64,000 nucleotides of DNA from Octopus sinensis (GCF_006345805.1 NC_043018.1:27590001-27654000); one strand, 5' to 3'; positions 961 through 53,651 are shown, numbered from the stretch's first letter. The notes: generated by a model from the letters alone, not told the origin. Numbers and translations are program-made.

Positions 961-1231
961 ATGACACCCGGAACATTACTATACACCCGTAACGAAACAA
1001 CGGCCAATTCTATTTCCAACAGCAACAATAACTTTACCAGGCGCAGGCGTGGCTGTGTGGTAAGTAGCTTGCTTCCCAACCACATGGTTCCTGGTTCAGT
1101 TCTACTGTGTGGCACCTTGGACAAGTGTCTTCTACTATAACGTCGGGCTGAACAAAGCTTTGTGAGTGGATTTCGTAGACGGAAACTGAAAGAAGCCCGT
1201 CGTATATATGTATATATATCTATATATATAA

Positions 1232-1875
1232 TTAATTAATAAGGGTGAGAGAATTAGATACTAATTTAATAGTATATCTATTCTACACCAAGTGGCCTAG
1301 TGCTCCGAGAAACCTGGATTATTATAATATTTTATAATATATTATAATATTTTTACAAAATAAATATAAGAGAGTGGTCACTATATGGCTCACTCTAGCA
1401 CCAGTTAATCCAAAAGGTTTCAACCACAAAAATACATGTTTCCCATGAAAGTCAGTACGATTGTTAGTTCACACGGACAGGGCAAATAAAAAATAACAAA
1501 AATACAGATTATTTTGGGACAATTGTTTCGCTATTAATGAATTAAATGTAATTTTGTCGGATGTAATCAATTGAACCACACGTGTATTTATCGTTATGGT
1601 AAAATCTGGCGTGTGATTGAGTGGATTTCATCCAGATAGTTTTGGCTGAGGAGCTACAAGTGGATTTTTTTGTAAGTAAAATTACATTTAATTCATTAAT
1701 AGCGAAACAATTGTCCCAAAATAATCTGTATTTTTGTTATTTTTTATTTGCCCTGTCCGTGTGAGCTAACAATCGTACTGACTTTCATGGGAAACATGTA
1801 TTTTTGTGGTTGAAACCTTTTGGATTAACTGGTGCTAGAGTGAGCCATATAGTGACCACTCTCTTATATTTATTT
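1232..1875. mobile_element. Dispersed fold-back copy of family A (left arm 1232-1555, inverted right arm 1556-1875)
   Basis: Same monomer sequence as the array. Orientation flips at AATGTAATTTT|GTCGGATG. Flanked by (TA)n. Confidence 0.92.
1633..1728 (+). ncRNA. Type I hammerhead ribozyme, family A (predicted cleavage after 1715, GUC)
   Basis: Helix I CAGAU-AG-UUUUGG / CCAAAA-UA-AUCUG; core CUGAGGA (1646-1652); helix II GCUA/UAGC extended by AGUGGAUU/AAUUCAUU; GAAA (1704-1707); palindromic helix III ACAAUUGU; C17. Confidence 0.88.
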
Positions 1876-1889
1876 ATCTATATATATAT

Positions 1890-4869: not shown

Positions 4870-5350
4870 GCTCGTATGTATGTAAGCATGTATGTATGTA
4901 TGTATGTATGTATGTATGTATGTATGTATGTATGTATGTATGTATGTATGTATGTATGTATGCATATAAGTATGTATGTATGTATGTATGCGTGTATGTA
5001 TATATGTATGCATATAAGTATGTATGTATGAATGCATATAAGTATGTATGTATGTATGTATGTATGCATGTATGTATGTATGTATGCATGTATGTATGTA
5101 TATATGTATGCATACAAGTATGTGTGTATGTATATATGTATTATGTATGTATGTATGCATGCATGTATGTATGAGTGTATGTATGCATATAAGTATGTAT
5201 GTATTTGTGTATGTATGTATGCATATAAATTTGTATGTATGTATGTATGTATGCATGTATGCATATAAGTATGTATGTATGTATGTATGCATATAAGTAT
5301 GTATGTATGTATGTATGTATGTATGTATGTATGTATGTATGCATGTATGT
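4870..5350. repeat. (TATG)n microsatellite
   Basis: Direct inspection. Confidence 0.95.
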
Positions 5351-5869
5351 GCGGGGGAAGGAGGTGCTGAAAAGTTCCTGGCTTTAAGGGTGTCATGAAA
5401 AACCTGGTTGGAGGCACAACCTTCCAACTTCATTTTAAGGACTTCTGCAGTAAGTGAATGAATTTGTGAGGGGAATAATTTGCACAAAATCACAATTAAC
5501 TGATCCGCCTGTATATTCTTTTACTCAAAGCCAGGAACTTTTCACCACACCTCCGTTTATTGACTGATTTTGTTCTAAATCAACGTTTCTTAACCATTTT
5601 CACCTATGGACCATTTTGGTACCTATTTTACTTGGATGGAACCTCGTAGACTTTCGATGTTAAAATACCCTTAAAGTTTTATATTTTTATTATTAAATAT
5701 TATTAAAAATAGTATTTTTTTAAAAAAACTGTCAGTGGCTGTGTGGTTAGAAGTTTACTTCCTGACAACAAGACTAAAGCCTTGTCAATAGATTTGGTAG
5801 TTGGAAACTGAAAGAAGCTCGTCATATATATATATATATTTTTTTTTTTCACCATGTGTACTTCGTAAA

Positions 5870-18573: not shown

Positions 18574-20524
18574 TTCCGGTTACCCAGAATGCAACACTAG
18601 TTGTTACAGTGAGAAGACGCGAGTTTTGGCTCCGTGAATGGAAAAAGAACAAAAAGGAAAATTGTCAATTATGTCTCGTTATAGCGAGAAAAAATATTGT
18701 TCTCATCACCATAACAGTGAATTGAGAATTTTTGTTTGAAAATTCTTTGGTGTGGCTTTTTTATCGTCAAATAATTTTCAAATTCTAGAGGGCGTATCTC
18801 GCTAGAAAAAGTGGAATTTACCGAACTTCAAGAATAACCCCGACTATTGGATTACCTGTTGGAGTATTAAACAAAGGATTCCCTGTCTGTTCTATTTGTG
18901 AGGTTTTTCTTATATTTTTCCCTTCTTCCATTTTTTCTTTCTTTCAAAATTTTGGTTCATTCTTTTCATTATTTTAATTTCAGTTTCTCTTTTATTTTGT
19001 TTTACTTCTATTTTTATTTGGTTTTAATTTTTTGGCGGACTGTTTATTAAACTACTTTTGAACTGCTTTTTTGGACATGGCATAGAAGGAACTTAGAAAA
19101 AAGTTTTAAAAGCAGTGGTTAAAAGTTATGGATGAGAGGTCGGTGGTGGTTAGATCTTATTCTAAAGTTCTTGATTCCATCACCGTCTTCCCAAATCCAT
19201 TTATAGAGAATGAACTGAAAAACTATTGGTCCTCTATGGAATACATATTCCGTGGTGTCAAACATGCAACCGTACGGTTGCTGTTTGACAACCATCGTAC
19301 TGCGGGAAGAAATTAATAAGAGTCTGGGTATCTGGGTTGCCTCCAGGCACCGAGGAGGGTTGGATTGAAGATACCACTGACGGGAACTGGGGGATAGCGG
19401 GCCGAGGCTCTTAAATGTAAGGGTATTGCCGGCGGTCGATTGGGAAGGGTCAAAAACGATTTTCACCCTGTGGACCCCATCGGCTGCAACAGATCTGGTC
19501 TTTCCAGATTTTTTTAAATGGCTGGCTGCAGGTATCCGGTGATACTTGAGGGACGTCCCCCTAAGTGTCACTCGTGCCTGCAGCCAGGACACATTAAAAA
19601 TAACTGCCCCCCAGAACCATGGTAAGGTCCTGGAACAGTCACTGGATGCCACTTCTCCTACATCCCAAGGAGAAGTGGATGTGGTTGCCTCCTCAACCCA
19701 AGAAGGATTAAAAAGAAGAAGGCGGGCAACAATATTTGCCTGCCGAAGGACCCTAAGGCTTCGGGAGGTGGGGGAGATACTCCAGACAAAGCGGAAGAGC
19801 TCCACTCTCCCGAAGTCAGGAAGAAAAGAAAAGAAAGAAAGAAGAACGTGTCATCGCAGGAGGGAGATGATGTGCTGTCTGCATGTCCCGAAGTTGTGCC
19901 ACCCGCGGTAGAAGAAACGCCCCCACCCTTAAAGATGATGAATTAATTATCTTTTTCTACAAGGGCGGGGAGGTGGAAAAATAGTAGAAGATCATAAAGA
20001 GACAGTAGATATGCCCTTCACACGAGATCCCAAATGGCCCCCCGCAGATAGCTGTGGAGGTCATAAGGTTTCCCTTGTGGGAAAGGCTTAAAGGATTTGG
20101 GGAGGATTGACGCATATGGCCGGGTGGCCCTTGCACGACTTACATGCCGTACATGAGTGAGACATGGGAAATGGCAGGATACAGGAACTCAAGCGGCATT
20201 AAGATAATGATGAATATATCGATGGATATATTGATGAGTAGGAGGTGAAAAAACCTCGTTAGAGAGTTTGAAGCCTCATCTTATTGTATTATTTGTAGTG
20301 GTTTATAACCTCAATTGTGTGTTTAAAAAAATATGTTAAGAAAGAGGTTTTAGTGCCTCCTTCTTGTAAAAGGTTTGAAACCTCATATTGATTTTTTTTT
20401 TAAAAATATGTTTTCGAGAAAAATCCAAACGGCGGGTGTTGGGTTTCGTCTCTCATTTATTCATTTTATTTCATTATCATTCATTAAAACTTTGTACTGT
20501 CTATATGACAAATTTTATGAAATA
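18574..20524 (+). mobile_element. 1.95-kb ORF1-only (HAL1-like) non-LTR retroelement inserted in a SINE, 15-bp TSD
   Basis: TSD AAGTAGCTTGCTTAC at 18559-18573 and 20525-20539, with SINE halves contiguous across it. 3' end ...ATGAAATAAA. No RT or EN motifs seen. Confidence 0.8.
19077..19911 (+). pseudogene. Decayed gag-like ORF1 with RRM-like segment and CCHC zinc knuckle
   Basis: MA*KELRKKF*KQWLKVMDERSVVVRSY...; RVWVSGLPPGTEEGWI; LEGRPPKCHSCLQPGHIKNNCP (C-x2-C-x4-H-x4-C at 19566-19607). Stops and frameshifts present. Confidence 0.8.
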
Positions 20525-23762: not shown

Positions 23763-24259
23763 GCACATACACACGCACATGCACAGACATATTCACACAC
23801 ACATATGTGTATATGCATGTACATGAAAGGGTTTCACTCAGCCTCTTTCGAAATTCACGCAAAAGGTTCGGTCGGTTTGAGTTTCTAGCAGAAGACACAT
23901 ACGGCAGGTGCTGCACGGTGGTACTAAACTCGAGACCATGTTTTTGCCAAGCGGGCTGCTTTATCACACGTCCACATACAGACGTGCACGTACTGACGAG
24001 CTTTTAAGCTAGAAACATGTCACCATTAATTACGAAAGAAATAGAAAACCGGTTTTATGAGTTATTATGCATGCGAATAAATATTAGGCCATTACGAATG
24101 AAACGTCCGATTTTGAACTAAAAGTTTATTTTATTTTTATCTTAACAAAAAGCAATGCAGTTAATCAAAGTATGCACCTAAATTATCAACACAATTTTGC
24201 CATTTTATTGGTTGCATATTTATACCAGTAGTGAAGAATTCTGGAGAACAAGAGGTAAT

Positions 24260-25228
24260 AAAATTACGAAAGGTTGCTTTTGCATCTTCTTCAGATTTGA
24301 AGTGTTTTCCTTGCAAAAAGTTGTCTAATGCCTGGAAAACTTGAGTCAGTTGGTGTAAGGCCTGGTGAATATGGTGGATGACAGAGCAGTTCCAAGTTCA
24401 GTTCCTGTAACCTGAGTAGCGTTATTTGTGCAACATATCGTCGAGCATTGTCTTGCATGAGAATTGGCCTGTCTCTATTGATCAATCTCGGTTGTTTAAT
24501 TGCAAGTTCACTCATCATTTCATCCAATTGGTTGATGTATACATCTGCTGTAATTGACTTACCAGGTCTCATGAAGCTGTAGTAGATGACACCAGTGCTG
24601 TACCACGAAACAGACACCTTTAGCTTTTTTTGGTGAATATTCTTTTTGGATTATGTTTTGGAATTTGGTCTCTAGACAACCACTGTGCAGAACACTTGCT
24701 AGTATTCGAAAGAATCCACTTTTCATCATACGTAATAATTCGATGCAAAAGTGGTTCACTTTTATGCCGTGACAGCAAAGAACAGCAAATTTCAAGACGA
24801 CGTGTCATTTGATGCTTGTTTAGTTCGTGTGGTGACCACTTGTTCGGCTTCTTTACCTTGCCGATATGTTTCAGATGGTCCAATGCAGTTGGAATCGAAA
24901 CATCAAACCTTACTGCTAACTCACGCGTAGTTTGAGATGTATCCGCTTCCACTACAGTTTCTAGCTCATTATCCATGTTGGCCTCAAGTCTACCACGGGG
25001 CTGATTTTCAAGAGTAAAGTCACCAGACCGGAACTTCCATCGACGTACAGTACTCTCATTCGCCACATCTTTGAACACCTCATTGATGTTTCGAGCTGTC
25101 TGGGATGCATTGGTTCCACGACGGGAACTCATATTCATAAACAAAACGAATTTTTTACGAATTTGGGTTAACAAAAATTGATTTTCAAGAGAAAACTCAC
25201 AATTATAATAAGACACCATGAATTGCAT
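24260..25228 (-). pseudogene. Mariner (DD34D) transposase, frameshifted
   Basis: TVRRWKFRSGDFTLENQPRGR, KWSPHEL (WVPHEL), RIITYDEKW, ILMQDNARRY, HPPYSPGLTPTD (YSPDLAPSD). Frameshift near 24620. Confidence 0.92.
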
Positions 25229-25300
25229 TTCGAAAAGAGATGATGTAAGTCTTCAATGTTGTAAAACAAAGAATTGTCAGGATAAAACATTAGAGTTAAC

Positions 25301-25817
25301 TAATGTAGACCTCATATGGTCTGACCACTAAGAAAAGATTATTCTCAAGAAAATTCAGCAAACGCCAAAACATAAGCGAACAAGACAAATGAAAAGATAC
25401 AAAATATATTGATTAGTCACATAATTAATATTCAATGTTTTACCCTTATTATTTAAATTTAAGTAACCATGTTCTCTAACCAGTAGAATTCCCTGCAGAA
25501 AATTATTTACTGCAGAATTATTTCAGGTATTTGGCGCGCCAAAACGAAGACATTTGAAATATACCCCCAAATATAATTGCTAGAACTATATTCACGTCCA
25601 GTCTCATGCGGTTATCTCGTGCATAGTTCTGCAAATCATATTTTGCTATGACGGTCACACTGATGAATTGCGGTCATTTACGTACGTACTATGTATTTGA
25701 CTAACCATTATATTTTGTAACTTTTCATTTATCTTGCTCGCCTACGTTCAGGCGTTTACTTAATTTTCATGAGAACAATCTTTTCTTAGTGGTCAGACCA
25801 TATGGGGTCTACATCTA
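25301..25817. mobile_element. MITE with ~66-bp imperfect TIRs, TA-flanked
   Basis: 25301-25366 (TAATGTAGACCTCATATGGTCTGACCACTAAGAAAAGATT...) is the reverse complement of 25751-25817. Confidence 0.75.
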
Positions 25818-33963: not shown

Positions 33964-34377
33964 AACTGGATGGTCACTACTGGAACTTTTTTGATCGTAA
34001 GTCTTTGATAGCAACACATACGTAAGCACATACAAAATACATTCATACGTTCATACATACAGACAGACACACACATACACCCACACACAGATCATGTGTG
34101 TATGTGTGAGTGAATATGGTAAGCAGAAGCTGTGTGGACTGCAGCCATGCCAAGCGCCACTTTGAGGTTTTCAGTCGAATAAATCGCGCACAGGACTTGT
34201 TCTATAGGTTGCTTTTGCTGATATGCTTCGTTACGGTGACGTAAGCAAACCAACATCGGAAATCAAGAGGTGGTGGGTGGAAACCATATTCAAAAACACA
34301 CACAGAAATACATGCATACATACTTGTATACATACGTGTATATATTAATATATACATGCATATATATATAATACAAC

Positions 34378-34414
<37 letters not shown>

Positions 34415-34470
34415 GCATATATATACATATATATATATATATATTATATATATATATATATATAATAATA

Positions 34471-37400
34471 ATAAGGGTGAGAGAATTAGATACTAATTTA
34501 TAGCATATCTATTCAACACCAAGTGGCCCAGTGCTCCGAGAACCTGGATTATTATAATATTTTGTAATATATTATAATATTTTATACAAAAAAAATAAGA
34601 GAGTGGTCACTATATGGCTCACTCTAGCACTAGTTAATCCAAAAGGTTTCAACCACAAAAATATATGTTTCCCATGAAAGTCAGTACGATTGTTAGCTCA
34701 CACGAACAGGGCAAATAAAAAATAACAAAAATACAGATTATTTTGGGACAATTGTTTCGCTATTAATGAATAAATGTAATTTTACTTACAAAAAAAATCC
34801 ACTTGTAGCTCCTCAGCCAAAACTATCTGGATGAAATCCATTCAATCACACGCCAGATTTTACCATAACGATAAATACACGTGTGGTTCAATTGATTACC
34901 TCCGACGTTATAATTCAAATGCCCCTACTAACAGCGCGCCAAACTTTCACGGAGACAAATACACATTTAGAATAAATGTAGCATAATTATATTAATTATA
35001 AGGGTGAGAGAATTAGATACTAATTTAATAGCATATCTATTCAACACCAAGTGGCCCAGTGCTCCGAGAAACCTGGATTATTATAATATTTTATACAAAA
35101 ATAAATATAAGAGAGTGGTCACTATATGGCTCACTCTAGCACTAGTTAATCCAAAAGGTTTCAACCACAAAAATATATGTTTCCCATGAAAGTCAGTACG
35201 ATTGTTAGCTCACACGAACAGGGCAAATAAAAAATACAAAAATACAGATTATTTTGGGACAATTGTTTCGCTATTAATGAATAAATGTAATTTTACTTAC
35301 AAAAAAATCCACTTGTAGCTCCTCAGCCAAAACTATCTGGATGAAATCCATTCAATCACACGCCAGATTTTACCATAACGATAAATACACGTGTGGTTCA
35401 ATTGATTACATCCGACGTTATAATTCAAATGCCCCTACTAACAGCGCGCCAAACTTTCACGGAGACAAATACCACATTTAGAAATAAATGTAGCATAATT
35501 ATAATTAATTAATAAGGGTGAGAGAATTAGATACTAATTTAATAGCATATCTATTCAACACCAAGTGGCCCAGTGCTCCGAGAAACCTGGATTATTATAA
35601 TATTTTATACAAAAATAAATATAAGAGAGTGGTCACTATATGGCTCACTCTAGCACTAGTTAATCCAAAAGGTTTCAACCACAAAAATATATGTTTCCCA
35701 TGAAAGTCAGTACGATTGTTAGCTCACACGAACAGGGCAAATCAAAAATAACAAAAATACAGATTATTTTGGGACAATTGTTTCGCTATTAATGAATTAA
35801 ATGTAATTTTACTTACAAAAAAAATCCACTTGTAGCTCCTCAGCCAAAACTATCTGGATGAAATCCATTCAATCACACGCCAGATTTTACCATAACGATA
35901 AATACACGGTGTGTTCAATTGATTACATCCGACGTTATAATTCAAATGCCCCTACTAACAGCGCGCCAAACTTTCACGGAGACAAATACCACTTTAGAAA
36001 TAAATGTAGCATAATTATTAATTTTAATAAGGGTGAGAGAATTAGATACTAATTTAATAGCATATCTATTCAACACAAGTGGCCCAGTGCTCCGAGAAAC
36101 CTGGATTATTTATATTTTATACAAAAATAATACGAGAGTGGTCACTATATGGCTCACTCTAGCACTAGTTAATCCAAAAGGTTTCAACCACAAAATATAT
36201 GTTTCCCATGAAAGTCAGTACGATTGTTAGCTCACACGAACAGGGCAAATCAAAAATAACAAAAATACAGATTATTTTGGGACAATTGTTTCGCTATTAA
36301 TGAATTAAATGTAATTTTACTTACAAAAAAATCCACTTGTAGCTCCTCAGCCAAAACTATCTGGATGAAATCCCTTCAATCACACGCCAGATTTTACCAT
36401 AACGATAATACACGTGTGGTTCAATTGATTACATCCGACGTTATAATTCAAATGCCCCTACTAACAGCGCGCCAAACTTTCACGGAGACAATACCACATT
36501 TAGAAATAAATGTAGCATAATTATAATTAATTAATAAGGGTGAGAGAATTAGATACTAATTTAATAGCATATCTATTCAACACCAAGTGGCCCAGTGCTC
36601 CGAGAAACCTGGATTATTATAATATTTTATACAAAAATAAATATAAGAGAGTGGTCACTATATGGCTCACTCTAGCACTAGTTAATCCAAAAGGTTTAAC
36701 CACAAAAAAATGATGTTCCCATGAAAGTCAGTACGATTGTTAGCTCACACGAACAGGGCAAATAAAAAATAACAAAAATACAGATTATTTTGGGACAATT
36801 GTTTCGCTATTAATGAATTAATGTAATTTTACTTACAAAAAAATCCACTTGTAGCTCCTCAGCCAAAACTATCTGGATGAAATCCATTCAATCACACGCC
36901 AGATTTTACCATAACGATAAATACACGTGTGTTCAATTGATTACATCCGACGTTAATAATTCAAATGCCTACTAACAGCGCGCCAAACTTTCACGGAGAC
37001 CAAACCACATTTAGAAATAAATGTAGCATAATTATAATTAATTAATAGGGTGAGAGAATTAGATACTAATTTAATAGCATATCTATTCAACACCAAGTGG
37101 CCCAGTGCTCCGAGACCTGGATTATTATAATATTTTATACAAAATAAATATAAGAGAGTGGTCACTATATGGCTCACTCTAGCACTAGTTAATCCAAAAG
37201 GTTTCAACCACAAAATAATGTTTCCCATGAAAGTCAGTACGATTGTTAGCTCACACGAACAGGGCAAATCAAAAATAACAAAAATACAGATTATTTTGGG
37301 ACAATTGTTTCGCTATTAATGAATTAAATGTATTTACTTACAAAAAAAATCCACTTGTAGCTCCTCAGCCAAAACTATCTGGATGAAATCCATTCAATCA

Positions 37401-40400
37401 CACGCCAGATTTTACCATAACGAAAATTAAATACACGTGTGGTTCAATTGATTACATCCGACGTTATAATTCAAATGCCCCTACTAACAGCGCGCCAAAC
37501 TTTCACGGAGACAATACCACATTTAGAAATAAATGTAGCATAATTATAATTAATTAATAAGGGTGAGAGAATTAGATACTAATTAATAGCATATCTATTC
37601 AACACCAAGTGGCCCAGTGCTCCGAGAAACCTGGATTATTATAATATTTTATACAAAAATAAATATAAGAGAGTGGTCACTATATGGCTCACTCTAGCAC
37701 TAGTTAATCCAAAAGGTTTCAACCACAAAATATATGTTTCCCATGAAAGTCAGTACGATTGTTAGCTCACACGAACAGGGCAAATAAAAAAAACAAAAAT
37801 ACAGATTATTTTGGGACAATTGTTTCGCTATAATGATTAAATGTAATTTTACTTACAAAAAAATCCACTTGTAGCTCCTCAGCCAAAACTATCTGGATGA
37901 AATCCATTCAATCACACGCCAGATTTTACCATAACGATAAATACCGTGTGGTTCAATTGATTACATCCGACGTTATAATTCAAATGCCCCTACTAACAGC
38001 GCGCCAAACTTTCACGGAGACAAATACCACATTAGAAATAATGTAGCATAATTATAATTAATTAATAAGGGTGAGAGAATTAGATACTAATTTAATAGCA
38101 TATCTATTCAACACCAAGTGGCCCAGCTCCGAGAAACCTGGATTATTATAATATTTTATACAAAAATAAATATAAGAGAGTGGTCACTATATGGCTCACT
38201 CTAGCACTAGTTAATCCAAAAGGTTTCAACCACAAAAATATATTTTTCCCATGAAAGTCAGTACGATTGTTAGCTCACACAACAGGGCAAATCAAAAATA
38301 ACAAAAATACAGATTATTTTGGGACAATGTTTCGCTATTATGAATTAAATGTAATTTTTACACTTACAACAAAATCCACTTGTAGCTCCTCAGCCAAAAC
38401 TATCTGGATGAAATCCATTCAATCACACGCCAGATTTTACCATAGATAAATACACGTGTTTCAATTGATTACATCCGACTTTATAATTCAAATGCCCCTA
38501 CTAACAGCGCGCCAAACTTTCACGGAGACAAATACCACATTTAGAAAAATGTAGCATAATTATAATTAATTAATAAGGGTGAGAGAATTAGATACTAATT
38601 TAATAGATATCTATTCAACACAAGTGCCCAGTGCTCCGAGAACCTGGATTATTATAATATTTTATACAAAAATAATATAAGAGAGTGGTCACTATATGGC
38701 TCACTCTAGCACTAGTTAATCCAAAAGGTTTCAACCACAAAAATCTATGTTTCCCATAAAGTCAGTACGATTGTTAGCTCACACGAACAGGGCAAATCAA
38801 AAATAACAAAAATACAGCTTATTTTGGGACAATTGTTTCGCTATTAATGAATTAAATGTAATTTTCTTACAAAAAAATCCACTTGTAGCTCTCAGCCAAA
38901 ACTATCTGGATGAAATCCATTCAATCACACGCCAGATTTTACCATAACGATAAATACCGTGTGGTTCAATTGATTACATCCGACGTTATAATTCAAATGC
39001 CCCTACTAACGCGCGCCAACTTTCACGGAGACAAATACCACTTTAGAAATAAATGTAGCATAATTATAATTAATTAATAAGGGTGAGAGAATTAGATACT
39101 AATTTAATCATATCTATTCAACACCAAGTGGCCCAGTGCTCCGAGAAACCTGGATTATTATAATATTTTGTAATATATTTAATATTTTATACAAAAATGA
39201 ATATAGAGAGTGGTCACTATAAGCTCACTCGCACTAGTTAATCTAAAAGGTTTCAACCACAAAAATATATGTTTCCCATGAAAGTCAGTACGTTGTTAGC
39301 TCACACGAACAGGGCAAATAAAAAATAACAAAAATACAGATTATTTTGGGACAATTGTTTCGCTATTAATGAATTAATGTAATTTTACTTACAAAAAACT
39401 CCACTTGTAGCTCCTCACCAAACCTATCTGGATGAATCCATTCAATCACACGCCAGATTTTACCATAACGATAAATAACACGTGTGGTTCAATTGATTAC
39501 ATCCGACGTTATAATTCAAATGCCCCTACTAACAGCGCGCCAAACTTTCACGGAGACAAACCACATTTAGAAATAAATGTAGCATAATTATAATTAATTA
39601 ATAAGGGTGAGAGAATTAGATACTATTTTAATAGCATATCTATTCAACACCAAGTGGCCCAGTGCTCCGATGAAACCTGGATTATTATAATATTTTATAC
39701 AAAAATAAATATAAGAGAGTGGTCACTATATGGCTCACTCTAGCCCTAGTTAATCCAAAAGGTTTCACCACAAAAATATATGTTTCCATGAAAGTCAGTA
39801 CGATTGTTAGCTCACACGAACAGGGCAAATCAAAAATAACAAAAATACAGATTATTTTGGGACAATTGTTTCGCTATTAATGAATTAAATGTATTTTACT
39901 TACAAAAAAATCCACTTGTAGCTCCTCAGCCAAAACTATCTGGATGAAATCCATTCAATCACACGCCAGATTTTACCATAACGATAAATACACGTGTGGT
40001 TCAATTGATTACATCCGACGTTATAATTCAAATGCCCCTACTAACAGCGCGCCAAACTTTCACGGAGACAAATACCACATTTAGAAATAAATGTAGCATA
40101 ATTATAATTAATTAATAAGGGTGAGAGAATTAGATACTAATTTAATAACATATCTATTCAACACCAAGTGGCCCAGTGCTCCGAGAAACCTGGATTATTA
40201 TAATATTTTGTAATATATTATAATATTTTATACAAAAATGAATATAAGAGAGTGGTCACTATATAGCTCACTCAGCACTAGTTAATCTAAAAGGTTTCAA
40301 CCACAAAAATATATGTTTCCCATGAAAGTCAGTACGATTGTTAGCTCACACGAACAGGGCAAATAAAAAATAACAAAAATACAGATTATTTTGGGACAAT

Positions 40401-40648
40401 TGTTTCGCTATTAATGAATTAAATGTAATTTTACTTACAAAAAAATCCACTTGTAGCTCCTCAGCCAAAACTATCTGGATGAAATCCACTCAATCACACG
40501 CCAGATTTTACCATAACGATAAATACACGTGTGGTTCAATTGATTACATCCGACGTTATAATTCAAATGCCCCTACTAGCAGCGCGCCAAACTTTCACGG
40601 AGACAAATACCACATTTAGAAATAATGTAGCATAATTATAATTAATTA
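34471..40648 (-). repeat. Tandem array of 12 full ~504-534 bp non-coding monomers, each with a hammerhead ribozyme on the minus strand (retrozyme/PLE pLTR-like, family A)
   Basis: Unit start ATAAGGGTGAGAGAATTAG recurs at about 34471, 34998, 35512, 36027, 36534, 37045, 37557, 38065, 38573, 39077, 39601 and 40115, with a partial unit at 40649. Units are near-identical apart from scattered 1-bp indels. No ORF longer than about 100 aa. Confidence 0.95.
34734..34829 (-). ncRNA. Hammerhead ribozyme of array unit 1 (representative). Others at 35245-35339, 35760-35856, 36268-36363, 36781-36875, 37287-37381, 37802-37895, 38310-38406, 38815-38908, 39337-39430, 39848-39942, 40382-40477
   Basis: Plus strand reads CAGATTATTTTGGGACAATTGTTTCGCTA...TAGCTCCTCAGCCAAAACTATCTG. 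Units 8, 9 and 10 have 1-nt deletions in helix III or the core. Confidence 0.87.
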
Positions 40649-40985
40649 ATAAGGTGAGAGAATTAGATACTAATTTAATAGCATATCTATTCATATCTAT
40701 ATGGATTATTATAATATTTTGTAATATATTATAATCCAGGTTTCTCGGAGCACTGGGCCACTTGGTGTTGAATAGATATGCTATTAAATTAGTATCTAAT
40801 TCTCTCACCCTATTAATTAATTATAATTATGCTACATTTATTTCTAAATGTGGTATTTGTCTCCGTGAAAGTTTGGCGCGCTGTTAGTAGGGGCATTTGA
40901 ATTATAACGTCGGATGTAATCAATTGAACCACACGTGTATTTATCGTTATGGTAAAATCTGGCGTGTGATTGAATGGATTTCATC

Positions 40986-41081
40986 CAGATAGTTTTGGCT
41001 GAGGAGCTACAAGTGGATTTTTTTGTAAGTAAAATTACATTTAATTCATTAATAGCGAAACAATTGTCCCAAAATAATCTG
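40986..41081 (+). ncRNA. Type I hammerhead ribozyme, family A (cleavage after 41068)
   Basis: Same motif as 1633-1728. Confidence 0.88.
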
Positions 41082-41520
41082 TATTTTTGTTATTTTTTAT
41101 TTGCCCTGTTCGTGTGAGCTAACAATCGTACTGACTTTCATGGAAACATATATTTTTGTGGTTGAAACCTTTTGGATTAACTAGTGCTAGTGTGAGCCAT
41201 ATAGTGACCACTCTCTTATATTTATTTTTGTATAAAATATTATAATATATTACAAAATATTATAATAATCCAGGTTTCTCGGAGCACTGGGCCACTTGGT
41301 GTTGAATAGATATGCTATTAAATTAGTATCTAATTCTCTCACCCTTATTAATTAATTATAATTATGCTACATTTATTTCTAAATGTGGTATTTGTCTCCG
41401 TGAAAGTTTGGCGCGCTGTTAGTAGGGGCATTTGAATTATAACGTCGGATGTAATCAATTGAACCACACGTGTATTTATCGTTATGGTAAAATCTGGCGT
41501 GTAATTGAGTGGATTTCATC

Positions 41521-41616
41521 CAGATAGTTTTGGCTGAGGAGCTACAAGTGGATTTTTTTGTAAGTAAAATTACATTTAATTCATTAATAGCGAAACAATT
41601 GTCCCAAAATAATCTG
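41521..41616 (+). ncRNA. Type I hammerhead ribozyme, family A (cleavage after 41603)
   Basis: Same motif as 1633-1728. Confidence 0.88.
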
Positions 41617-41812
41617 TATTTTTGTTATTTTTTATTTGCCCTGTTCGTGTGAGCTAACAATCGTACTGACTTTCATGGGAAACATATATTTTTGTGGTTG
41701 AAACCTTTTGGATTAACTAGTGCTAGAGTGAGCCATATAGTGACCACTCTCTTATTTTATTATTATTATTATTTATATATATATATATATAATATATATA
41801 ATATATATATAT

Positions 41813-41903
<91 letters not shown>

Positions 41904-42042
41904 CACATATATATATGTATATATATATACATGTAATATATATATATATACATATATATATATGTATATATATATATATACACATATATATATATATACA
42001 TATATATGCATATATACATATATATATATATATACCTATATA

Positions 42043-42075
<33 letters not shown>

Positions 42076-42207
42076 CTATATATATATATATATATACACA
42101 TATATAGTTAATCCAAACAAGAAAGCACAAAAAAACACAACAACGCGAGGACGTGGAACAAATATAGTATTATTGGACGGTCAGGAAAGAAGGAAAGAAG
42201 GAGGATT

Positions 42208-42241
<34 letters not shown>

Positions 42242-42244
42242 GAT

Positions 42245-42309
<65 letters not shown>

Positions 42310-42310
<1 letters not shown>

Positions 42311-42600
42311 TGAATAAATGAAAGAATGGAGTCGAACGAAGATGTTAACAAAATTCCTTTACTCTCGACACATGTTTCGAAGACAGCATATTTTCATTCC
42401 GAAGGAATAAAGGATGCATTATGCAATCTTTTCATCAGGAAAGAAAAGGAGCCTCTCTCAACAACAAGACAAACAAAAATTTCGATGATTGCCTACATGG
42501 TAACCATCGAAATTTTGCTAAAAAACGTTTTGGCTGCTATTTCTAGAAAGTTCAGTATGTGGCAAAGTAATTTATTTTACTAAGCCCTAATTATATAATG
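42310..42600 (-). mobile_element. PLE-like fragment (family B) with HHR at 42362-42443; related copy 48955-49130 (HHR-like 49006-49089)
   Basis: CUUUC CUGAUGA AAAGA...UCUUC GAAAC AUGU GUC GAGAG. Second copy reads CUUUC CUGAGGA GAAGA...GAAAC AUGU GUC GAAAG. Confidence 0.65.
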
Positions 42601-51680: not shown

Positions 51681-53651
51681 ATGTATATATATATGTACAC
51701 AGTGTTCACAAATTATAATTATACAAATGTAATTATCTTCACTAATTACTCGATTTATTATATCTATTACAGACTCATCAATCAACTTGCTTGCAACCAA
51801 CAGGGCCCATGAGGAAGTGTTCGTGCATGTATATGTGCATGTAGGTCGGCGGGTATGTGTGTATGTGCGTTTGCGTATGTGGGTGCGTGCGTGTGTATGT
51901 GTGTGTGTGTGCGCACACTTATGTATTAGAATGTAGTGTTTGGCGAGTATGCACATTCTTGATATTAATGACTCTGATGAAGCAATAAGATGTTGCACAA
52001 GCGGTCTACTGTGAGTGCACTGTATCTTATAGCAGAAACAGATGTAAGCTAATGATGCCGATTGTGTAGCTCCTGTTTGTTAAGTTGTCATTCATCGGTG
52101 GATTTATATATGTTTGTGTGTGTGTGCATATTTGTGTGTACGTGAGTGTGTGTGCGTGCATGCGTGTGTGTACATATGTGTGTGTGTGGGTACGTGTGCG
52201 TTCGAGCGTGTGTGTGTGTGCGTGTGTGTTTGGGCGTGTAGGTATGTGTGTGTATGCTCGGTTTTTGTCATTCAAATCCATTCTGGTTATGTTAAAGAAT
52301 TCTGGTTGAGCCAGGAGCCAGCAATCCCTTTCCTTAAAATAAAACAGGTTGCTGCGGAATCTACCCAAAGAAATAAGCGAAAAACCAGAGGTAGGCAAGT
52401 TGGTTATGGATGGATGGAAATACTGTGTGGATGAACTGATGTACAGTGCATCGGGGGACGGACTAAAGTCTTAAAAATTTGTTTGTGCCTTGATGTCGGG
52501 TTTAAGTTTAGATTTCTTTTCCTGTTACGTTTAGTGTTTTTACTAAAATTTAGACCTAGATTAAAGATTCGCTGGAATGGTAAGGTGCAATCTAAAACAA
52601 GAAATAAAAAAAATAATTGTTTATATTAGTTTAGTTGTTATCAAGGATATTTTTGTTTAACCCCAGCTCAGCTGTGGTTGAACAGGTTTATCTTTGATCA
52701 AATGTAGTTGAGTTATGGCCATCCATCGTATTTTGTTTAGGATAAGTAAAGATCGAATGTTGCAATATGTTCCTTGTCTCTTAAAACGGTAAGGGGTAAT
52801 TTTTATGGGGTATTTGACTGTTATTTTTAGCCTTGCAAGCGACTGATTACGTTAACGCATCATCGTCGTCTCGGGATGTTTCGCTAGCTCGAACTATCTC
52901 TGAAGTAAACTTTCACATTGGAAGCACTCCGTCGGTTACGACGACGAGGGTTCCGGTTGATCCGATCAACGGAACAGCCTGCTCGTGAAAGTAACGTGTA
53001 AGTGGCTGAGCACTCCACAGACACGTGTACCCTTAACGTAGTTCTCGGGGATATTCAGCGTGACACAGAGAGTGACAAGGCCGGCCCTTTGAAATACAGG
53101 TACAACAGAAACAGGAAGTAAGAGTGAGAGAAAGTTGTGGTGAAAGAGTACAGCATTGATCACCACCATCCCTGCCGGAGCCTCGTGGAGCTTTTAGGTG
53201 TTTTCGCTCAATAAACACTCACAACGCCCGGTCTGGGAATCGAAACCGCGATCCTACGACCGCGAGTCCGCTGCCCTAACCACTGGGCCATTGCGCCTCC
53301 ACAAACTTTCACATACACATAGTGAGAAAAAAAAAATCAAGACGAGAATAACAACAACATATTTCACATCAGCACCTACAACAACAACAACATTCACGAC
53401 AGCGACAACGGAATAATTAAAACGAAATATTTTAATAAAAATGCGGTTAAGTATTCGAAAAACGTCAAAAAGAAAATACGTACAATACAAATGATACAAC
53501 AATACCATCAAGAATAACAACAACTATCTCTGAAGCATACAACAACAGTTGAAAACTCTTCCACAAGACGTGTTCTTATTTTTTGCGTTCTTTGATTATT
53601 TATGAAGAATTCAGGTTTTCTATGGCCGGGAGAGTTATGCAATTAGCGTTC

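Follow-up and report, generated by a model that had tools for sequence, protein, structure and literature searches.

Retrozymes without long terminal repeats (non-LTR retrozymes) are non-coding tandem repeats of low GC content (<45-50%), ranging from dimers to large multimers, whose ~150-450 bp units carry type I hammerhead ribozymes (HHRs) (Cervera & de la Pena, 2020, PMC7229834). A 2026 preprint gives family consensus lengths of 51-972 bp and homology to the pseudo-LTRs (pLTRs) of Penelope-like elements (PLEs) in Xenopus (10.64898/2026.07.22.740005). In cnidarians, mussels, insects and lower vertebrates, type I HHR repeats are established retrozymes; the literature that we searched, which leaves out subscription journals, contains no report of cephalopod retrozymes or HHR repeats, and a prior description is possible. 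Here we describe an array of HHR-bearing repeats, and a second, smaller copy of the same element, in a 64,000-nt stretch of the Octopus sinensis genome (GCF_006345805.1 NC_043018.1:27590001-27654000; hereafter the window, from whose first letter all positions are counted). We consider it likely that the two loci represent a non-autonomous, non-coding family of the non-LTR retrozyme class in octopus, mobilised by PLE-type machinery, and that the long arm of the array grew at the DNA level after insertion. The array adds an example of a known retrozyme class and is not a new kind of system.

The large locus (34461..41765) is built of two head-to-head arms of ~516-nt non-coding, HHR-bearing units at 32.8% GC, with 12 unit-equivalents on the minus strand and ~2 inverted on the plus strand (~7.3 kb, ~14 repeats). 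Direct-repeat families are spaced at 505-535 nt over ~34.47-40.7 kb, and the inverted segment at 40.7-41.77 kb has 93-100% complementarity to the other arm; the array is absent from the output of Tandem Repeats Finder (TRF) because the TRF period limit was 500. To define the arms we cut the units at the putative GUC| cleavage site, aligned them into a 516-nt consensus (positions in it are given as cons) and compared this with the 64-kb window by BLAST. Some units take a long form of ~536 nt, distinguished by a 20-nt segment, AAAATATTATAATATATTAC. The minus arm (34461..40722), followed by BLAST from 40693 to 34461, comprises a partial unit (cons 216-516), 11 full units (505-534 nt) and a terminal cons 1-273. 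In the RNA sense it starts at cons ~160-216 at the junction, has cons ~186-215 deleted internally, carries 12 HHR motifs and ends distally at cons ~273, in an AU-rich tract. The plus arm (40723..41765; 40723 to 41764 by BLAST) comprises cons 169-516, a single full unit of the long form (41069-41603, 535 nt) and cons 1-162, with two intact HHRs, and its distal end at cons 162 also falls in an AU-rich tract. At the inversion junction (40694..40740) the arms meet in a palindrome of the long-form segment, ATATTATAAT(AT), where 8 nt of filler (TATCTATA) take the place of ~30 nt of the minus arm; read directly, the sequence joins the two arms inside the perfect palindrome ATATTATAATAT.

No open reading frame (ORF) in the array exceeds 104 aa, none is conserved from unit to unit, and none inside the array matches a Pfam domain. 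Together with the repeat families and the BLAST arms, this bears out the arrangement of ~12 tandem and ~2 inverted non-coding units given in a preliminary description of this DNA. That description also held the monomer to be larger than typical animal retrozymes: at 516-536 nt it does exceed the ~150-450 bp range (PMC7229834), yet it lies within the 51-972 bp of the more recent survey (10.64898/2026.07.22.740005).

A fuzzy regular-expression search returned 14 HHR motifs in the array (12 minus, 2 plus), 11 of them exact and three with 1-nt deletions, as the preliminary description had counted. Written as RNA, the motif is CAGAU-AG-UUUUGG / CUGAGGA / GCUA-[43 nt]-UAGC / GAAA / C-AAUU-G-UC| / CCAAAA-UA-AUCUG. 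The conserved catalytic core of a type I HHR comprises C3-U4-G5-A6-N7-G8-A9, G12-A13-A14 and A15.1-U16.1, and its cleavage-site nucleotide H17 is any but G; CUGAGGA...GAAA...GUC| is present in 11/14 array copies and in the copy at the second locus. A representative intact HHR lies at 40986..41081 on the plus strand, and the cleavage sites previously placed at 41068/41069 (plus) and 34747/34746 (minus) are correct. The three exceptions are the eighth, ninth and tenth motifs from the left, all on the minus strand. The eighth (38310..38409) reads CAUUG for CAAUUG in loop 3, and keeps its core but loses the helix III palindrome; the ninth (38815..38911) has CUGAGA for CUGAGGA and a U to G change in helix I, and the tenth (39337..39432) has C3 deleted (UGAGGA) and a helix I U to G change, and both are predicted to be inactive. 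The window contains 16 copies of CTGAGGA where 3.55 would be expected (4.5-fold), and 0/100 shuffles reach this count. A generic HHR descriptor revealed no other HHR family in the window, while shuffled windows yield 0-3 weak matches.

Type I HHRs have three helices around the core, of which helix I is the open one, and in the canonical metazoan form the catalytic core is joined to a helix I of 6 bp, a helix II of 4 bp and a helix III of 1-2 bp with a palindromic loop of 2-4 nt (PMC4209133). Judged by its sequence, the array HHR has exactly this architecture: helix I has 6 bp (UUUUGG/CCAAAA), an internal loop and 5 further bp; helix II has 4 bp (GCUA/UAGC); and helix III consists of 2 bp closing a palindromic AAUU tetraloop (AC-AAUU-GU). 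Internal loops stand at the expected distances, 6 bp up helix I and 4 bp up helix II. Only loop 2 is unusual: beyond a 2x2 internal loop (CA/AA) it continues as a stem of 8 bp and another of 5 bp with a hexaloop at the tip, an insert of ~40 nt in all. We rejected the minimal variant found in PLEs (min-HHR), to which the motif had earlier been compared: min-HHRs have a helix II of 7-8 bp, a helix I of 4-5 bp and a helix III with neither non-conserved nucleotides nor a loop (PMC4209133), whereas here helix III has a stem and tetraloop, helix II has 4 bp before the internal loop and helix I has 6 bp.

In a search confined to 126 nt, RF00163 (Hammerhead_1, clan CL00010) aligned over its full length (model 1-45/45) to the representative HHR with 28.5 bits (E=1.4e-5) and every core position matching; the octopus sequence departs from the model through 39 nt inserted into loop 2 and through its divergent helix II. 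The type I scan proposed in the preliminary description stood to that extent, but the gathering score was not reached: Rfam at gathering threshold returned no hammerhead over the 64-kb window, nor did it at E<=10 over 9.5 kb. Rfam gathering thresholds overlook hammerheads with large loop 2 insertions, as this family shows. Among other Rfam matches, a sub-threshold match to MIR6217 (52 bits, gathering score 110) at 40598-40865 is the hairpin of the inversion junction and not a microRNA; those to mir-297, mir-3149 and mir-1277 were rejected as spurious, being (TA)n/(TG)n microsatellites.

The consensus matched an additional copy at ~1227-1888 (BLAST match 1227-1882), which the preliminary description had missed. 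Its minus arm (1231..1555) corresponds to cons 479-516 followed by 1-~273/285, is of the long form, and has an HHR that is truncated at its 5' side and without the CUGAGGA core. The plus arm (1556..1874; cons 357-516 and 1-~162/167) holds an intact HHR at 1630-1728 on the plus strand (CAGAU..AUCUG 1633-1728), with a predicted cleavage site at 1715|1716. The arms abut head to head at 1555|1556, have 3 private substitutions in common and correspond to adjacent segments of one multimeric template with an 83-nt gap between them, as twin priming would leave. The locus is bracketed, within a short TA microsatellite, by direct repeats of 14 bp, TATCTATATATATA; the copies at 1217..1230 and 1875..1888, both read on the plus strand, form a candidate target-site duplication (TSD), and the empty site before insertion would read ...GTATATATATCTATATATATATATAC... 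Unique flanks here and at the large locus are unrelated. From these sequence features the window appears to hold two independent insertions, of which the second is apparently an unamplified copy.

Both insertions lie in similar targets. The large locus is flanked by a (TA)n-rich microsatellite on the left (34308..34464) and a (TA)n microsatellite on the right (41770..42311), each read as part of the target. Elsewhere in the window there are 112 (TA)n tracts, covering 6.75% of the non-element sequence, and given this coverage the location of both loci (2/2) in (TA)n has p~0.005. The monomer has three AT-rich tracts, and two of these, at cons ~150-185 and ~257-290, contain the outer arm ends (4/4), while the inner ends of the head-to-head arms vary (cons 479, 357, ~160-216 and 169). 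Fixed outer ends combined with variable inner ends are the pattern expected of fixed priming sites with variable 5' truncation. A specific 3' recognition motif common to the end tracts (CTCTC..TTAT) was rejected, as 219/500 shuffles score as well. Since the end tracts share only AT-richness, we favour priming by microhomology with the TA target as the probable mechanism. The window is also rich in TG/CA and TATG-type repeats.

Inverted arms in TA-rich DNA at both loci might also suggest a DNA transposon-type element, either a foldback element or miniature inverted-repeat transposable element with a TA target or a Helitron-associated satellite, the arms being its terminal repeats. We regard this as very improbable. 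The outer termini do not form a pair of inverted repeats (cons ~273 against ~165, the shuffle comparison above applying here too), and the inner ends differ between the loci in the manner of 5' truncation. There are no TC...CTRR Helitron ends and no related transposase, the sole transposase being an unrelated mariner remnant.

The architecture instead resembles that of PLEs, whose hallmarks include partial tandems accompanied by a 5'-truncated copy in inverse orientation, and a bias towards insertion in microsatellites (Craig et al., 2021, PMC8557442). A (TA)n preference is described for the PLE group Naiads, which have been reported in Octopus spp., and a microsatellite bias is proposed for Neptune (PMC8557442); among PLE-related motifs, HHRs also occur in pairs on opposite strands, 100-700 bp from each other (Cervera & de la Pena, 2014, PMC4209133). 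A tandem and inverted structure with a 5'-truncated inverted arm and a microsatellite site is present at both octopus loci, and here too HHRs on opposite strands lie a few hundred nucleotides apart. Unlike PLEs, the octopus element has no ORF for a reverse transcriptase (RT) or GIY-YIG endonuclease, and its HHR is canonical; Naiads share the (TA)n preference but have no HHRs.

An autonomous PLE had earlier been proposed to supply RT in trans, and a search for one yielded no candidate in the 64-kb window or in three further octopus loci (L001-L003). Outside the array, a Pfam scan of 135 stop-to-stop ORFs (>=75 aa, low-complexity filtered) found only mariner domains and neither RT nor GIY-YIG; batch Pfam scans of L001-L003 found neither RT nor PLE. 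A GIY-YIG probe (an approximate PLE-type consensus) matched only short metagenomic fragments in the protein collection, with no octopus protein and no full-length PLE among them. This absence bears on the possibility that the units are themselves pLTRs of an autonomous PLE, left as a solo-pLTR array after loss of its ORF and not a separate non-autonomous family. PLE pLTRs do carry HHRs and PLE insertions are tandem or inverted (PMC4209133, PMC8557442), and vertebrate retrozymes are derived from pLTRs in the 2026 preprint (10.64898/2026.07.22.740005). But the 64-kb window contains no RT or GIY-YIG remnant, no ORF lies between the 14 units or in the second locus, and the HHR is canonical whereas metazoan pLTRs typically have the minimal variant. 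We give such an origin a slim chance; it differs from a non-autonomous retrozyme in ancestry only, not in mechanism.

A more specific proposal can be offered only as a conjecture with a small chance of being right. Mobilisation may be due to a (TA)n-targeting, HHR-less PLE clade, with Naiads as candidates. HHR-bearing retrozymes would then exploit the PLE machinery as independent parasites that prime through AU-rich/(TA)n microhomology, with no descent from the pLTRs of their helper, and the long helix II hairpin could be a family-specific functional module, for example in recruitment of the helper or a ligase.

In thermodynamic folding models the helices of the ribozyme stay accessible. In the isolated 99-nt motif the minimum free energy (MFE) structure (-24.7 kcal/mol) has helix I and helix II with its extension but lacks the 2-bp helix III, and forcing the full HHR fold costs 2.7 kcal/mol. 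As a template for the monomer we used the best-kept unit (35258..35772, minus), which departs from the consensus by 1 substitution and 1 indel. Helices I and II are retained when it is folded as a linear RNA (MFE -136.1 kcal/mol, z=-4.39). Whether the monomer is linear or circular, pairing of nt 1-12 with 435-446 as helix I encloses the remaining ~420 nt in a branched domain and helix II stays intact; 67% of the nucleotides are paired in the circular MFE structure. Burial of the core in an alternative fold, which the preliminary description had named as evidence against self-cleavage, was not seen: the core is exposed in the linear and circular monomer models.

Two copies of the motif co-fold as a double hammerhead with an 8-bp helix III formed by ACAAUUGU, at -54.6 kcal/mol against 2 x -24.4 for separate motifs. 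The MFE structure of a 612-nt transcript spanning two consecutive HHRs is likewise the double hammerhead, with pair probabilities of 0.96 for the trans helix I, 0.95 for the monomer-closing helix I and 0.76 for the 8-bp helix III; in the competing fold the single-HHR helix I reaches 0.015 and the helix III hairpin 0.003. The models therefore predict that multimeric RNA strongly favours the double hammerhead. Forster et al. are said to have dealt with the hammerheads of newt/axolotl satellite 2 in 1988. Those amphibian HHRs (HHR_Amex2, PMC7229834) resemble the octopus motif in their weak helix III, with a 2-bp stem and a palindromic tetraloop, and their double hammerhead has been shown experimentally, whereas in the octopus element it is predicted; they differ in sequence, monomer length and host phylum, and their loop 2 is small and normal. 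Invertebrate retrozyme HHRs usually cleave well as monomers (PMC7229834), and a dimer requirement for the octopus HHR is a prediction of the model only.

We suggest that in a multimeric transcript of the HHR strand neighbouring ribozymes would pair through their palindromic ACAAUUGU, forming a double hammerhead with an 8-bp helix III that would cleave after each GUC. The released monomers, with their ends held together by helix I, could be circularised by a host RtcB-type ligase, and in the circle a 2-bp helix III would be too weak for efficient re-cleavage. Integration would proceed by target-primed reverse transcription (TPRT) at (TA)n microsatellites with a PLE GIY-YIG endonuclease/RT, with nicked TA-rich DNA as the primer on AU-rich stretches of the RNA. 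Priming a second time, across the break and in a manner resembling twin priming, would yield the inverted 5'-truncated arm, and the 12-unit arm would then have been enlarged or homogenised at the DNA level by unequal exchange.

This last step is suggested by the distribution of variants. The units differ by 64 deletions (mostly 1 nt), 12 insertions and 58 substitutions, a strong deletion bias which suggests that many of the differences are errors of an unpolished long-read assembly in this tandem region. The three HHR defects, previously put down to possible sequencing errors, may be among them; the bias points that way for the array as a whole, and for these three only possibly. Other differences are ordered along the array. 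The long form is found in the junction-side units Bm1 and Bm3, the terminal partial unit, the plus arm and the second locus, whereas the interior units Bm2 and Bm4-Bm11 (9 units) have a 20-nt deletion in common, and 6 of these deleted units also carry T30G and are interspersed among T30 units. Since interior units have derived variants in common, the 12-unit array is not a single rolling-circle cDNA of one circle. Either the template was a heterogeneous multimer or, as the sequences more simply suggest, the array may have grown or been homogenised after insertion by unequal exchange that left ancestral variants at its edges. The long form, ~536 nt, would be the ancestral one.

The same variants speak for an explanation of the array as inert satellite DNA, in which a tandem repeat carries a fossil HHR, owes its spread and growth to DNA-level processes only (unequal crossing-over, segmental duplication) and has no RNA intermediate today: a 20-nt deletion in 9 units and T30G in 6 indicate amplification or homogenisation of DNA and not a single cDNA. 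Several other observations likewise weigh against a mobile retrozyme. Mutation density is equal in the HHR (25 events/96 nt) and outside it (109/420 nt), at 0.26 per nt, and this comparison of event densities gives no sign of selection on the HHR within the array. The element did not recur in ~91 kb of octopus DNA from outside the window (L001-L003 and the O. bimaculoides locus L009). The RF00163 score falls 5.5 bits below the gathering score of 34, a shortfall due to the 39-nt loop 2 insertion together with the divergent helix II; for calibration, a compact, textbook-perfect octopus HHR is also sub-threshold (RF02275, 30.7 bits against a gathering score of 52). With loop 2 replaced by an internal loop and a 13-bp hairpin, the usual tertiary contact between loops 1 and 2 is putative here. 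The complementary strand also folds stably (z=-5.27), and with both strands at z<-4 the excess structure is therefore not strand-specific. A microsatellite surrounds the candidate TSD, whose core 12-mer, ATCTATATATAT, is present 8 times on the plus strand of the window; statements on targeting and end positions draw on two loci. Finally, we infer a PLE partner from architecture and the literature alone, and transcription, self-cleavage, circularisation and PLE mobilisation from models and the published pathway.

We nevertheless regard inert satellite DNA as unlikely. Segmental duplication leaves unexplained the second locus, which has unique flanks of its own, a 14-bp repeat as candidate TSD, 5' truncations that vary and arm ends at the same AU-rich tracts. 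The HHR is intact in 11/14 array copies and in the small locus, and many of the unit differences resemble assembly errors (64 deletions against 12 insertions).

A retrozyme-like system, as the preliminary description had it, is thus supported by the non-coding, AT-rich tandem HHR units, the second copy with its candidate TSD, the insertion architecture and the fold models. Metazoan non-LTR retrozymes, among them the 350-390-bp repeats of Mytilus galloprovincialis (PMC7229834), are likewise tandem, low in GC and non-coding, with one type I HHR per unit. Like the octopus element they have no LTR, primer-binding site or polypurine tract; they show a TSD of >4 bp when one is present, and have a highly self-paired monomer RNA, a property that is predicted for the octopus element. 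The octopus element, known here from DNA alone, differs from them in its longer monomer, the ~40-nt hairpin in loop 2 and its cephalopod host. At the level of sequence it appears to share every retrozyme feature tested, and its assignment to the class is supported to that extent. The paired insertions would provide direct structural evidence on retrozyme integration, a step so far mostly deduced in the retrozyme literature, and point to PLE-type TPRT with microhomology priming and an arm made by something like twin priming. They also illustrate that a long array need not derive from a single rolling-circle cDNA. The family is a candidate source of abundant circular RNAs of ~0.5 kb in octopus tissues.

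A different HHR element occurs in O. bimaculoides (CM046607.1, locus L009). Its HHR, at 5423-5465 on the minus strand, reads UUCAGG CUGAUGA CGAG-CAAAGA-CUCG GAAA CAUG UC CCUGAA, a compact canonical type I motif with loop 2 CAAAGA and a palindromic ACAUGU helix III; it is the HHR to which RF02275 gives the sub-threshold 30.7 bits. It lies in a head-to-head inverted pair of ~600 nt (~5260-5850) whose partner copy is decayed, and the element has no sequence similarity to the monomer of the window. Compared with the window HHR, 4/4 pairs of helix II and 2 pairs of helix I differ, and all of the changes are compensated. At least two families of HHR elements, alike in their inverted architecture, are therefore present in octopus genomes. 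A canonical 43-nt type I HHR also occurs in a eukaryote contig that is non-octopus by its repeats (ENA ERZ22157276 ctg13172l, L004; 5134-5176, minus), where it reads ACCUGC CUGAUGA GACC-CCAUAA-GGUC GAAA CCGG UC GCGGGU. The element of the window itself was absent from the non-octopus contigs L004-L008; CTGAGGAGCTA-N30-55-TAGCGAAACAATTGTC had 0 matches in metagenome contigs, and the repeat's spurious ORFs had no exact match in the protein collection, nor the 104-aa ORF any match in a homology search.

No convincing host exon was seen in the window. A decayed mariner/Mos1-type transposase (HTH_48, Transposase_1), which has no relation to the HHR element, occupies 24090-25306; the DNA of this remnant is ~82% identical to O. 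bimaculoides and O. sinensis copies, and the best protein matches of its ORF, at ~66-70% identity, are taxonomically mixed. On the minus strand, 19119-19805 contains a 228-aa ORF of normal composition, with no Pfam match and no exact match in the protein collection, which may be a transposable-element remnant or a chance ORF. Interspersed repeats of the window gave 41-50 high-scoring segment pairs (HSPs) with each of three O. bimaculoides loci, never reaching 90% over at least 150 nt, and 183-186 HSPs with an O. sinensis locus (GCA_006345805.1), at up to 97% identity, which places the host within the O. sinensis/vulgaris group and agrees with the octopus-like genome of the preliminary description. 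The youngest shared repeat seen, which is also the best lineage marker for the host, is an interspersed repeat of ~390 bp at 52919-53305, of which the O. sinensis locus L002 has 3 copies at 96.6-97.2% identity.

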